A stretch of DNA of 64,000 nucleotides from Anaeramoeba ignava BMAN (taxonomy: Eukaryota; Protista; Anaeramoebae): assembly GCA_028826165.1 (NCBI GenBank), contig JAPDFW010000067.1:248001-312000 (forward strand), in the 5' to 3' direction. Shown piece after piece: positions 22,808 through 34,100 of this stretch. Below the pieces are notes generated by a model. The model was not told the DNA's origin and did no database searches. It saw only the letters and a program-made list of their open reading frames with translations. Each line of letters opens with the position of its first letter. Within the stretch, counting starts at the first letter, position 1. The position numbers and the translations under genes were made by a program.

Positions 22808-23412
22808 CAAATCAATTAATCAATCAAATCAATCAATCAATCAATCAATCAATCAATCAATCAATCAATCAATCAATCAATCAATCAATCAATCAATCAA
22901 TCAATCAATCAATCAATCAATCAATCAATCAATCAATCAATCAATCAATTAATCAATCAATCAATCAATCAATCAATCAATCAATCAATCAATCAATCAA
23001 TCCATTATCAATAATCACCACCAACAACCACCACCAATTACCAATACCAATCCAACCAACCAATTACCAATTACCAATCACCACCACCAATTAATACCAA
23101 TTACCAATTACCAACCAATCACCACCACACAATTACCACCACCATCACCAATTACCAATAACCATTATCAATACCAATCAATCCAATCACCAATTACCAA
23201 CCAATTAATCACCAATACCATTCACATCAATTACTAATTACCAATCAATACCAATTACCAATACCACCACCAACCAATCAACCACCAATCCAATCACCAC
23301 ACCACCAACCAATCAATCAATCAATCAATCAATCAATCAATCAATCAATCAATCAATCAATCAATCAATCAATCAATCAATCAATCAATAAATAATTCAA
23401 TCAATCAATCAA
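22808..23412. repeat. (ATCA)n microsatellite with a degenerate ACC-rich core; left boundary of ARM cassette 1
   Basis: Perfect (ATCA)n flanks around a G-free irregular core at about 23000-23310. Confidence 0.9.
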
Positions 23413-24160
23413 ATATAAAAAATGAGAATAGATTTAATTTAATATTTAATTTAAAAATTAATCTAAAAATATAATTTAATGTTTATTTTTATGTTTAAAA
23501 TATTAATTTAATGTTTTATATTTAAATAAATTAATTAAAATATTTTATCAATTTTATTTAATTATTGGTAATAATTTTATATTATTTTGAATAAAGAAAT
23601 ATTAATAAAATATATAAAATAGAATTAATTCCAAATTTAATTATTTAATATTCTTTTATTCCATTTTTAAATAAATTAATTAAAATATTTTATTAATTTT
23701 ATTTAATTTTTGGTAATTATTTTTTATATTATTTTGAATAAATAAATGTTAATAAAATATATAAAATAGGATTAATTCCAAATTTAATTATTTAATATTC
23801 TTTATTCCATTTTTATTTTTTTTTCATTTTTTTCTTTCAAAAACAAAAATTTAAAATTAAGTAAATATTTTTTTTCTTAAATTTTAAAAACAAAAAATAA
23901 AAATAAAAATAAAATTTAATAATAATAAATAATATAAATATAAAATTTAAATGAAATTAAAACAAAATAATTATTAATTACTTATTAATTTAATATTATT
24001 TCAATAAACAAAAAAAAAAGGAAAAATAAATTCAAAATTTTATTAACAAAAAATTATCAATAAAAAAATTACAATTTAAATTTAATTGAAAATAAAAATA
24101 AAAAAGAAAATATTTTTATTATTGATTTATTATTATTTCATAAATATTTATTTTATTTAT
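23411..24160 (+). promoter_or_regulatory. Upstream non-coding region shared with 28048-29098 (putative promoter); contains two ~140-bp subrepeats
   Basis: AAAAAATGAGAATAGATTTAATTTAATA... through ...TATTATTTCATAAATATTTATTTTATTTAT is nearly identical in both copies and ends 60-80 nt before each ATG. Promoter function is inferred. Confidence 0.6.
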
Positions 24161-24218
24161 TCCTTTAAAAAATAAATTTTCCTTTTTTTGTTTTAAAAAT
24201 AAAATTAAAAAGAAAAAA

Positions 24219-32100: not shown

Positions 32101-33750
32101 TAGAAAACCAAATTGAAATAAGAAATTTAAAAGGAATTGAACCTATTATTAAAGCAATGAATAATTTCCTAAATAATCAAGATATTCAAATTAAAGGATG
32201 TGGAGCTTTACAGAATATTGCTGCTAATAATGGGTAAATAAAAAATTAAAAAATTAAAAAATCAAAAATTAAAAATTAAAAATAAAAATAAATTTACAAA
32301 ATAATAAATAAATAATTATTAATTATTAATTAAAATCAAAAAAAAATTTAATCAATTCCAAATTTATTTCAAAAATAAAAATATTAAAATAGAAAACCAA
32401 ATTGAAATAAGAAATTTAAAAGGAATTGAACCTATTATTAAAGCAATGAATAATTTCCTAAATAATCAAGATATTCAAATTAAAGGATGTGGAGCTTTAC
32501 AGAATATTGCTGTTAATAATGGTAAATAAAAAATAAAAAATTAAAAAATCAAAAATTAAAAATAAATATCATTTATTTTCCATTTTTTTTTGGAATTCAA
32601 AATTAAAAATTAAATCAAAAAATATCAAAAAATAATTCCAAAAAATAAATTAAAATTAAAAATAAATTTACAAAATAATAAATAAATAATTATTAATTAT
32701 TAATTAAAATCAAAAAAAAATTTAATCAATTTCAAATTTATTTTCAAAAATAAAAATATTAAAATAGAAAACCAAATTGAAATAAGAAATTTAAAAGGAA
32801 TTGAACCTATTATTAAAGCAATGAATAATTTCCTAAATAATCAAAATATTCAAATTAAAGGATGTGGAGCTTTACAGAATATTGCTGTTAATAATGGTAA
32901 ATAAAAAATAAAAAATTAAAAAATCAAAAATCAAAAATTAAAAATAAAAAATAAATTTACAAAATAATAAATAAATAATTATTAATTATTAATTAAAATC
33001 AAAAAAAAATTTAATCAATTCCAAATTTATTTTCAAAAATAAAAATATTAAAATAGAAAACCAAATTGAAATAAGAAATTTAAAAGGAATTGAACCTATT
33101 ATTAAAGCAATGAATAATTTCCTAAATAATCAAAATATTCAAATTAAAGGATGTGGAGCTTTACAGAATATTGCTGCTAATAAGGGTAAATAAAAAATAA
33201 AAAATTAAAAAATCAAAAATTAAAAATTAAAAATTAAAAATAAATTTACAAAATAATAAATAAATAATTATTAATTATTAATTAAAATCAAAAAAAAATT
33301 TAATCAATTTCAAATTTATTTCAAAAATAAAAATATTAAAATAGAAAACAAAATTGAAATTAGAAATTTAAAAGGAATTGAACCTATTATTAAAGCAATG
33401 AATAATTTCCTAAATAATCAAGATATTCAATATTGGGGATGTGGAGCTTTACAGAATATTGCTGTTAATAAAGGTAAATAAAAAATAAAAAATTAAAAAA
33501 TCAAAAATTAAAAATTAAAAATAAATATCATTTACAAAATAATAAATAAATAATTATTAATTATTAATTAAAATCAAAAAAAAATTTAATCAATTCCAAA
33601 TTTATTTCAAAAATAAAAATAGAAAACCAAATTGAAATAAGAAATTTGAATGGAATTGAATCTATTATTAAAGCAATGAATAATTTCCCAAATAATCAAA
33701 AAATTCAAGAAAAAGGAAAATTAATTATTAAGAGATTCCAAAAAAATTGA
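29179..33750 (+). CDS. RING - TKL-like kinase - SH3 - armadillo repeat protein. Exons 29179-30178, 30285-30361, 30680-31121, 31585-31689, 31816-31944, 32104-32233, 32393-32521, 32768-32896, 33057-33185, 33345-33473, 33623-33750
   Basis: RING CPIC...CQDGHSICGDC...CPFCR; intact kinase motifs VVIK, HRDLKPEN, DFG, APE; SH3 AQYDFEASNPSELSFSFGD...DGW...GLVPLNY; a cap exon plus seven ARM exons. Exon 32104-32233 is 130 nt rather than 129. Confidence 0.85.
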
Positions 33751-34100
33751 ATTACTTTTTCCTTTTAATTTTAATTTTCTTTATTTCAAAACAATTCCAA
33801 TAAAAAATTAAAATCAAATTATTTTTATATTTTAGATTTTATTTTGAATTAATCAATCTTAAAATCAATCTTAAAATCAATCTTAAAATCATAAAAGAAG
33901 AGGAAAAATAGAATTGAAGAAGATCAAATTATTTAATTAAATTAAAGTTATTCTCATTTTTTTTTAAAATAAATTCCAAAAAAAAATTAAATTTTAAATT
34001 TGAATTTTATTGATGAATTAAAAATAAAAATGAAAATAATATTGAAATAAAAAGGGAATGTTTGTAAATTTGATTAATTTTTTTGAATTCAAATCCTCTT

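Follow-up and report, generated by a model that had tools for sequence, protein, structure and literature searches.

Results

Architecture of the two genes

Two adjacent genes of Anaeramoeba ignava BMAN, here called unit 1 and unit 2, lie on the forward strand of the stretch of DNA analysed in the present study (the window: 64,000 nucleotides, positions 248,001 to 312,000 of contig JAPDFW010000067.1 of assembly GCA_028826165.1, or C68:248001-312000 in our numbering of the 42.8-Mb A. ignava assembly, in which all genome searches were made). Both genes end in an array of armadillo (ARM) repeats and begin with unrelated heads, a BTB domain and coiled coil in unit 1 and a RING, a kinase and an SH3 domain in unit 2. 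Judged from sequence, the notable part of this locus is that its genes belong to a hypervariable ARM family, and the swap of the head is a common case of ectopic domain shuffling, visible here at short sequence distances. An earlier interpretation, made from the letters of the window alone and called here the sequence-only reading, had given both units a common anatomy: a shared upstream region, an exon end of the type FINxISNL, a cap exon, a DNRNK exon, internal ARM exons (two in unit 1 versus five in unit 2) and a terminal exon ending in QKN and a stop. All of these elements were found in both units. The coordinates are collected in Table 1.

Unit 1 consists of six exons, every intron being GT-AG and of phase 1, and gives an open frame of 753 aa when the exons are concatenated by script (which was done solely for frame counting). 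It runs from a Gln/Asn repeat through the BTB domain, a weak BACK and a coiled coil to the cap, the DNRNK exon, two internal ARM exons and the terminal ARM exon. The BTB domain is detected by Pfam (E 4e-14), and its region fold-matches the Cul3 adaptors SPOP, KBTBD and KLHL11 and also vaccinia A55. Unit 1 thus has the order of a Cullin-3 adaptor, namely a BTB followed by 3-box/BACK helices (the BACK weakly) and a substrate domain.

Unit 2 begins with an exon that carries both RING and kinase, followed by a linker exon, an SH3 exon, the cap, the DNRNK exon, five internal ARM exons and the terminal one. Pfam detects the kinase (3e-49), the SH3 domain (2e-12) and also the RING. All eight zinc ligands of the RING are kept, as are the catalytic Lys, HRD, DFG and APE of the kinase, the glycine loop of which is degenerate. 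The public protein KAJ5075045.1 (P0124, 835 aa, automatically named 'aardvark') is a 100% match to the kinase, SH3 and terminal exons of unit 2, and its model links the kinase/SH3 exons to the ARM exons as had been foreseen; that the kinase exons are spliced to those of the ARM array is predicted from the splice signals together with this annotation. The label 'aardvark' is an automatic ARM match, and an F-box was not found in the protein that carries it.

The internal exons had been described as 129-nt units. The exon-modular build of the array holds, but the exon at 32104-32233 has 130 nt and its frame is broken in the assembly. It is the sole such case in 150 extracted exons, and the public model sidesteps it through a shorter following exon. 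The extra base may be an assembly or consensus error. It was also observed that the end of this exon resembles a blend of two adjacent exon ends. The internal exons of unit 2 are spaced at 288-289 nt with one spacing of 375, and the first four are mutually 96-99% identical. Four adjacent exons so alike at so regular a spacing indicate that the array was recently lengthened by exon-plus-intron copying.

A large gene family with a hypervariable face

When the genome was searched with the 129-nt ARM exon, 590 first-look candidates turned up, spread over many contigs. Twenty loci were fetched, and with the window they provide 23 family genes. That only the two loci of the window exist is ruled out by these genes and by the 19 loci at which the upstream block occurs. 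The catalogue of N-terminal domains and repeat counts which the sequence-only reading had proposed lists 18 BTB heads, 2 of the RING-kinase-SH3 type (unit 2 and a gene on contig C110, public model P0123) and 3 genes without a recognisable head, the number of internal exons ranging from 2 to more than 15. Nine of the BTB heads were recognised by Pfam and the others by being 89-99% identical to unit 1 in DNA, and these heads come in two subtypes. The headless genes are the first gene of locus L037 and those of L043 and L049; one has a short in-frame deletion product, one is degenerate and one starts right before the cap. The first exons of the BTB paralogues at L032, L038, L041, L044 and L047 contain indels of 1-2 nt, mostly in A-runs, which may be assembly errors or may mark pseudogenes. 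In P0145, a more distant public protein, the domain order is ARM-RCC1-BTB.

The tail is of the armadillo type. Pfam assigns Arm/ARM_LRRK2 on the public protein, and PDB sequence and Foldseek searches match Vac8, ARMC4, LRRK2 and designed ARM proteins. The tail of the C110 paralogue was modelled as an ARM solenoid (AlphaFold AF2, pTM 0.77) with helices 2 and 3 well formed and helix 1 of low confidence. The repeats are three-helix units of about 42 aa, and each exon of 43-44 codons corresponds to one of them; the exons are uniformly of phase 1, vary in number and have been shuffled.

Of the 42 repeat positions, roughly half are invariant or almost so across the 90 distinct internal exons. Variability is highest at positions 2, 29, 30, 33, 36, 40 and 42, and positions 29, 33, 36 and 40, plus 30 and 37, share one face of helix 3. 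Asn37 is retained in 79 of the 90 exons and would provide the Asn ladder of helix 3, predicted here to bind the backbone of a peptide; such a ladder is known to hold the peptide backbone (PMC6838082). Eight face positions were set beforehand by the designed-ARM numbering. Together they account for 14.2 of the 24.3 bits of entropy, at a permutation p of about 5e-6, and 75 distinct binding-face codes occur in the 90 exons. On the face the proportion of non-synonymous differences (pN) is 0.337 versus 0.169 for synonymous ones (pS), and at the remaining positions pN is 0.052 versus a pS of 0.070. Within the closest subfamily the per-base difference is 0.254 in face codons, 0.051 in other codons and 0.059 in the flanking introns. 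At position 36 a third-base G is retained across many amino acids despite the A/T-rich genome, as is expected if the replacement changes radiate from TGG or TTG. There is no stop codon in 99 exons. The four-gamete test is failed by 44 of 45 variable-site pairs, and the exon distance is 0.081 within a locus versus 0.103 between loci. Taken as a sequence pattern, this indicates concerted evolution together with diversifying selection on the binding face. The supposition that a family of variable ARM genes exists is thereby borne out, as regards the number of exon candidates and upstream-block loci, the varying repeat number and the position of the variation on the predicted peptide-binding face.

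Origin of the changed head

The RING-kinase exon of unit 2 is a member of a separate family of about 35 paralogues, which public models fuse to SH3, RhoGEF-PH, SH3-MyTH4-RhoGAP, ankyrin, ubiquitin, a second RING-kinase or ARM. Such paralogues were seen at C128:45807-70642, on C61, C71, C73 and other contigs, several of them in tandem and many wrongly named 'palmitoyltransferase'; the loci on C82, C71 and C62 are known from match coordinates only. The kinase of unit 2 is closest to the C71 paralogue (91%) and that of C110 is 94% identical to the C82 one, the two ARM-linked kinases being 87% identical to each other. Between unit 2 and C110, pS is 0.33 in the kinase and 0.04 in the SH3 exon. With a dN/dS of 0.25, the kinase is by this estimate under purifying selection.

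In a probe across the C110 junction the first 106 bases are 95-97% identical to BTB-ARM genes, and bases 93-321 are 87% identical to the C82 gene. As the two matches overlap in 14 nt of A/T, the C110 crossover can be placed there. The donor-type gene on C82 is RING-kinase-SH3-coiled-coil, and no cap/ARM match adjoining it was found among the matches listed. On the 3' side of C110, the last 110 nt or so of the exon are again of BTB type, and the 78-nt intron is kept. The upstream DNA shared by unit 2 ends sooner than that of C110, at a 15-nt motif present twice in C110, which reflects an independent crossover or else a deletion that came afterwards; on the 3' side of unit 2 the exon end is diverged and the 463-nt intron is unique. 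A piece of about 58 nt of this intron (about 31390-31448) gave a match of about 82% to several copies at C76:39443-41247. That only the N-terminus is unrelated was thus right for the heads, which do differ, but too narrow, since the unshared part starts about 80 nt upstream of the unit 2 ATG and also takes in the pre-cap intron (78 versus 463 nt).

The 5' and 3' breakpoints therefore differ between the two RING-kinase-ARM genes, and the constant breakpoints and fixed signals of a programmed cassette were not found in them. An exon-bounded head swap was considered and rejected, the breakpoints lying in the 5' flank and at exon/intron ends. The two kinase genes did not come out together in FastTree trees of the flanks, but support is weak. 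Unit 2 is pieced together from upstream DNA of the ARM family, a C71-type kinase, an SH3 of the C110/C82 type and an ARM tail, a mosaic that needs more than one recombination or conversion event, either two captures or one capture with later conversions. The FINxISNL exon end is not bound to ARM, because P0125 (RING-kinase-SH3-MyTH4-RhoGAP, probably C62:536194-537967) has a related end before its MyTH4-RhoGAP. Variable breakpoints, different donors and the presence of the RING-kinase on many other tails point to ectopic recombination among large paralogue families and not to a dedicated system of interchangeable outputs. Of the earlier idea of interchangeable ubiquitination and kinase outputs, what stands is that the heads are of E3 type; 18 of the 23 are BTB, only 2 of 23 are RING-kinase-SH3, and the fusion is part of a genome-wide domain shuffling.

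Flanking DNA and neighbouring genes

The upstream blocks of units 1 and 2 are 94% identical across 640 nt, and the genome search found this block at the 19 loci mentioned above with 78-100% identity. The upstream region is shared as had been described, but its distal half is a dispersed satellite of about 144 bp; only the proximal 330 nt or so are specific to the ARM subfamily, and the notion of a wholly family-specific block was rejected. A 27-nt marker for the start of the first satellite unit has 534 genome matches, and the upstream-region search gave 2702 candidates with the satellite included. A further stretch of this A/T satellite (units of about 144-147 bp) was seen at 28049-28747. The proximal block is, from its position and conservation, a probable promoter. 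The similarity of the unit 2 upstream DNA to that of unit 1 stops at 29098, inside a 15-nt A/T motif.

The units had further been described as framed by (ATCA)n. Arrays do stand before and between them, but the one after unit 2 is merely vestigial. Arrays of at least 8 copies were observed on the sense strand only, 7 in the window and 16 in the fetched loci with none antisense (counted in window positions 22827-28044 and loci L031-L048), and on C80, C81 and C110 they flank whole genes on both sides. The (ATCA)n arrays may be sites of unequal exchange. A transposon-borne unit was rejected, as neither terminal repeats nor a transposase were noticed in a search that was not exhaustive.

A genome-wide search for BTB gave 3711 loose candidates, of which the best 150 scored all had E below 1e-19. 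The window also carries three BTB-BACK-TLDc genes and one F-box gene (5940-7634, 7834-9282, 35863-37341, 34101-35438). On the opposite strand (-) lie the CCR4-Not subunit Not1 (13577-19935; three consecutive open reading frames with microsatellite stretches between them that are probably introns), a Sin3 gene in pieces (40544-44062) and a BEACH-WD40 gene with a single open reading frame of 3639 aa (46497-57416).

Table 1. Features of units 1 and 2 and their flanks (window positions)
Feature	Position	Strand	Remarks
(ATCA)n array upstream of unit 1	22810..23412	+	degenerate C-rich middle
Dispersed A/T satellite units, ~144-147 bp	23412..23815	+	not ARM-specific
Proximal upstream block	23830..24160	+	common to 19 loci of the ARM subfamily
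Unit 1 exon 1	24219..25857	+	Gln/Asn repeat, BTB, BACK-like helices, 14-aa coiled-coil repeats, FINxISNL end
BTB in unit 1 exon 1	about 24690-25001	+	Pfam
BACK-like helices in unit 1 exon 1	about 25041-25169	+	weak Pfam
Unit 1 ARM cap exon	25936..26040	+	105 nt, phase 1-1
Unit 1 DNRNK exon and two internal ARM exons	26176..27040	+	129 nt and 132 nt each
Unit 1 DNRNK exon	26176-26304	+	129 nt
Unit 1 internal ARM exons	26546-26677 and 26909-27040	+	132 nt each
Unit 1 terminal ARM exon	27280..27404	+	QKN-stop at end
Unit 1 shared 3' flank	27405..27512	+	leads into (ATCA)n
(ATCA)n array between units 1 and 2	27515..28044	+	
Unit 2 upstream DNA	28049..29098	+	satellite units and proximal block
Unit 2 5' flank of RING-kinase-family origin	29099..29178	+	RING-kinase paralogues align from about 29103-29111
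Unit 2 exon 1	29179..30178	+	C3HC4 (Sina-like) RING and Ser/Thr kinase; VIK, HRDLKPEN, DFG, APE intact
Unit 2 exon 2	30285..30361	+	Pro/Ser-rich linker
Unit 2 exon 3	30680..31121	+	SH3, Pro-rich linker, diverged FINxISNL end
Intron peculiar to unit 2, before cap	31122..31584	+	463 nt; relatives ~70-110 nt
Unit 2 cap and DNRNK exons	31585..31944	+	cap 31585-31689, DNRNK 31816-31944
Unit 2 five internal ARM exons	32104..33473	+	starts 32104, 32393, 32768, 33057, 33345
Unit 2 terminal ARM exon	33623..33750	+	QKN-stop at end
Unit 2 shared 3' flank	33751..33870	+	vestigial ATCA

Discussion

The evidence leans, though not strongly, towards units 1 and 2 belonging to a large and young family of A. 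ignava whose proteins recognise substrates for ubiquitin ligases, with selected faces and recombined heads. By analogy with other ARM proteins, the Asn ladder would grip an extended peptide and five or six helix-3 residues per repeat would set the side-chain preference. The usual BTB-BACK head could dock on Cullin-3, the rarer head would bring its own RING and kinase activities, and bound targets would become ubiquitinated. The sequence pattern suggests that the genome accumulates diversity in the course of evolution, exon-plus-intron units being duplicated and exchanged and binding-face codons being positively selected. As the mosaic pattern suggests, sequence of the separate RING-kinase family took the place of the head through ectopic recombination or gene conversion at short A/T-rich homologies, and this happened more than once. 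The fast-changing targets would more likely be foreign (bacterial, symbiont or viral proteins) than self, which is the most speculative step of this scheme.

A number of points weigh against the substrate-recognition reading. The face positions were numbered after our own alignment to designed ARM proteins, and the pN/pS values are uncorrected pairwise counts on recombining paralogues. The BACK match after the unit 1 BTB is weak (E 0.005), and the TM-scores of the BTB fold matches are just about 0.4-0.46. Some copies may be dead, as the frame-breaking exon of unit 2 and the exon 1 indels in many BTB paralogues suggest. As BTB genes are hugely expanded in general, the expansion of the family says by itself nothing about defence.

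A more ambitious form of the same idea is an intracellular, ubiquitin-based surveillance in which each ARM exon reads about two residues, arrays recombine for new peptides of symbionts or invaders, and the same E3 and kinase heads serve ARM sensors and ankyrin sensors alike; this we put forward only tentatively. That the proteins are instead self-directed regulators, for example of an expanded Rab/endosomal machinery behind the symbiosome, with an ARM face co-evolving with host paralogues and SH3 and kinase parts tied to membrane signalling, seems rather unlikely. It would agree with the best Pfam match, the LRRK2 ARM region, which is Rab-binding in solved complexes, with the expansion of membrane-trafficking families in Anaeramoeba (PMC11550330) and with the RhoGEF, RhoGAP and MyTH4 tails of sister RING-kinase genes. 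However, the LRRK2 match is generic ARM similarity at 16-19% identity, and a face that changes about four times as much as the introns in genes 5-10% apart, with nearly as many codes as exons, would be changing faster than self partners usually need.

It is improbable that the whole is a mostly neutral by-product of a recombination-prone, repeat-rich genome in which ARM exons and pieces of the RING-kinase become dispersed and fused with no recognition role. The RING-kinase module does sit on many unrelated tails, the units are flanked by satellites and microsatellites, headless and frameshifted copies are present, and neutral recombination probably accounts for the head fusion itself. The ARM exons do not fit: about half of their positions stay invariant, none carries a stop, and change is confined mainly to one helix face and is mostly non-synonymous; the purifying selection on the kinase also speaks against neutrality. 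A programmed diversifier, switching heads or ARM exons per cell by directed recombination or combinatorial splicing, we regard as very unlikely. Symmetric phase-1 exons would permit in-frame skipping, and same-strand (ATCA)n arrays bracket units at several loci, but the breakpoints of the two kinase genes differ, lie off the exon borders and share no common signal, and neither a recombinase nor a silent-cassette layout was seen. As four of the five internal exons of unit 2 are near-identical, skipping would alter length more than specificity. It is hardly credible that misassembly produced the tandem pair or the junction of kinase and ARM, even in a repeat-rich region with a possible consensus error in the 130-nt exon, for the units differ throughout (94-95% upstream, different exons) and a second RING-kinase-SH3-ARM gene exists on C110 that is only 87% identical. 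The family thus looks, in its sequences, like a natural library of variable binders and not like a programmed swapping machine. The contribution of this locus lies in its breakpoints and donors, as evidence of the way in which the head was changed.

Anaeramoeba hosts a structured bacterial symbiosome, and the family may bear on how free-living protists discriminate symbionts from intruders. A constant scaffold with five or six variable residues per exon offers directly testable candidates. The variable positions coincide with those varied in designed armadillo binders, and natural codes could yield new pockets. The head mosaics record domain shuffling at distances short enough for breakpoints and donors to be mapped. 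If the surveillance idea were true, the family would amount to the protist equivalent of an NLR repertoire, lacking the nucleotide switch, as well as a natural library of ARM pockets.

Comparison with known systems

The sequence-only reading knew of no ARM-based system of this kind, and none was found in the papers searched here: the literature search, mostly outside subscription journals, gave no paper on an ARM version of an exon-per-repeat repertoire or on this A. ignava family, nor one on an ARM/BTB expansion in metamonads. In those parts of the Anaeramoeba genome paper that were available, armadillo and BTB are absent from the main text and one unrelated BTB row occurs in the supplements. 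Pfam scans of the family proteins detected neither NACHT nor NB-ARC, as NLR/STAND proteins would have, and scans of the full public proteins detected no ROC-COR tandem, the mark of ROCO proteins.

The brown algal ROCO LRR and NB-ARC-TPR genes (PMC11378527) are alike in that each exon holds one repeat and the phase is uniform, in exon shuffling and diversifying selection, and in a proposed immune role; for the algal genes alternative splicing of the repeat exons has been shown (PMC11378527). Their LRR/TPR exons are of 72 nt and phase 2 and go with ROC-COR or NB-ARC, whereas those of A. ignava are ARM exons of 129-132 nt and phase 1 with E3-type heads. The Tetrahymena LRR genes with 90-bp exons (PMC6564038) are likewise from a protist, with many fixed-length exons of a single phase, variable repeat number, ectopic recombination within and between genes and a kinase as a partner domain. 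They differ in being LRR and phase 2, in their tens of thousands of exons and in an association with REP retrotransposons, none such having been seen in A. ignava; positive selection is not mentioned in the main text of that paper (PMC6564038). Fungal NLRs such as Podospora HET-E/NWD (PMC4986451) share highly similar repeats, concerted evolution, positive selection at few interface positions and N-terminal effector domains re-assorted through fusions; they have a NACHT/NB-ARC switch and act in cell death, whereas the A. ignava family has exon-bounded ARM repeats and an apparent ubiquitination output.

As far as can be taken from PMC8665587, which cites Thomas 2006, the F-box and MATH-BTB expansions of nematodes and plants resemble the present family in a conserved cullin-binding head with a fast-evolving substrate tail, in birth-and-death growth and in the foreign targets proposed for them. 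The substrate domain of A. ignava differs in being a modular exon-per-repeat ARM array. An ARM solenoid joined to a ubiquitin-ligase module is also found in plant U-box-ARM proteins, ARMC5 (ARM-BTB), ZYG11/ZER1 and Dictyostelium Aardvark. These are conserved genes with divergent repeats, unlike the near-identical cassettes with a hypervariable face described here. The closest likeness in the repeat itself, that is, a constant scaffold, an Asn ladder and variable helix 3 pockets, is to the designed armadillo repeat proteins (PMC6838082, PMC11228518), which are engineered; by analogy with them, the natural repeats of A. ignava could be reading their targets in modules of two residues.

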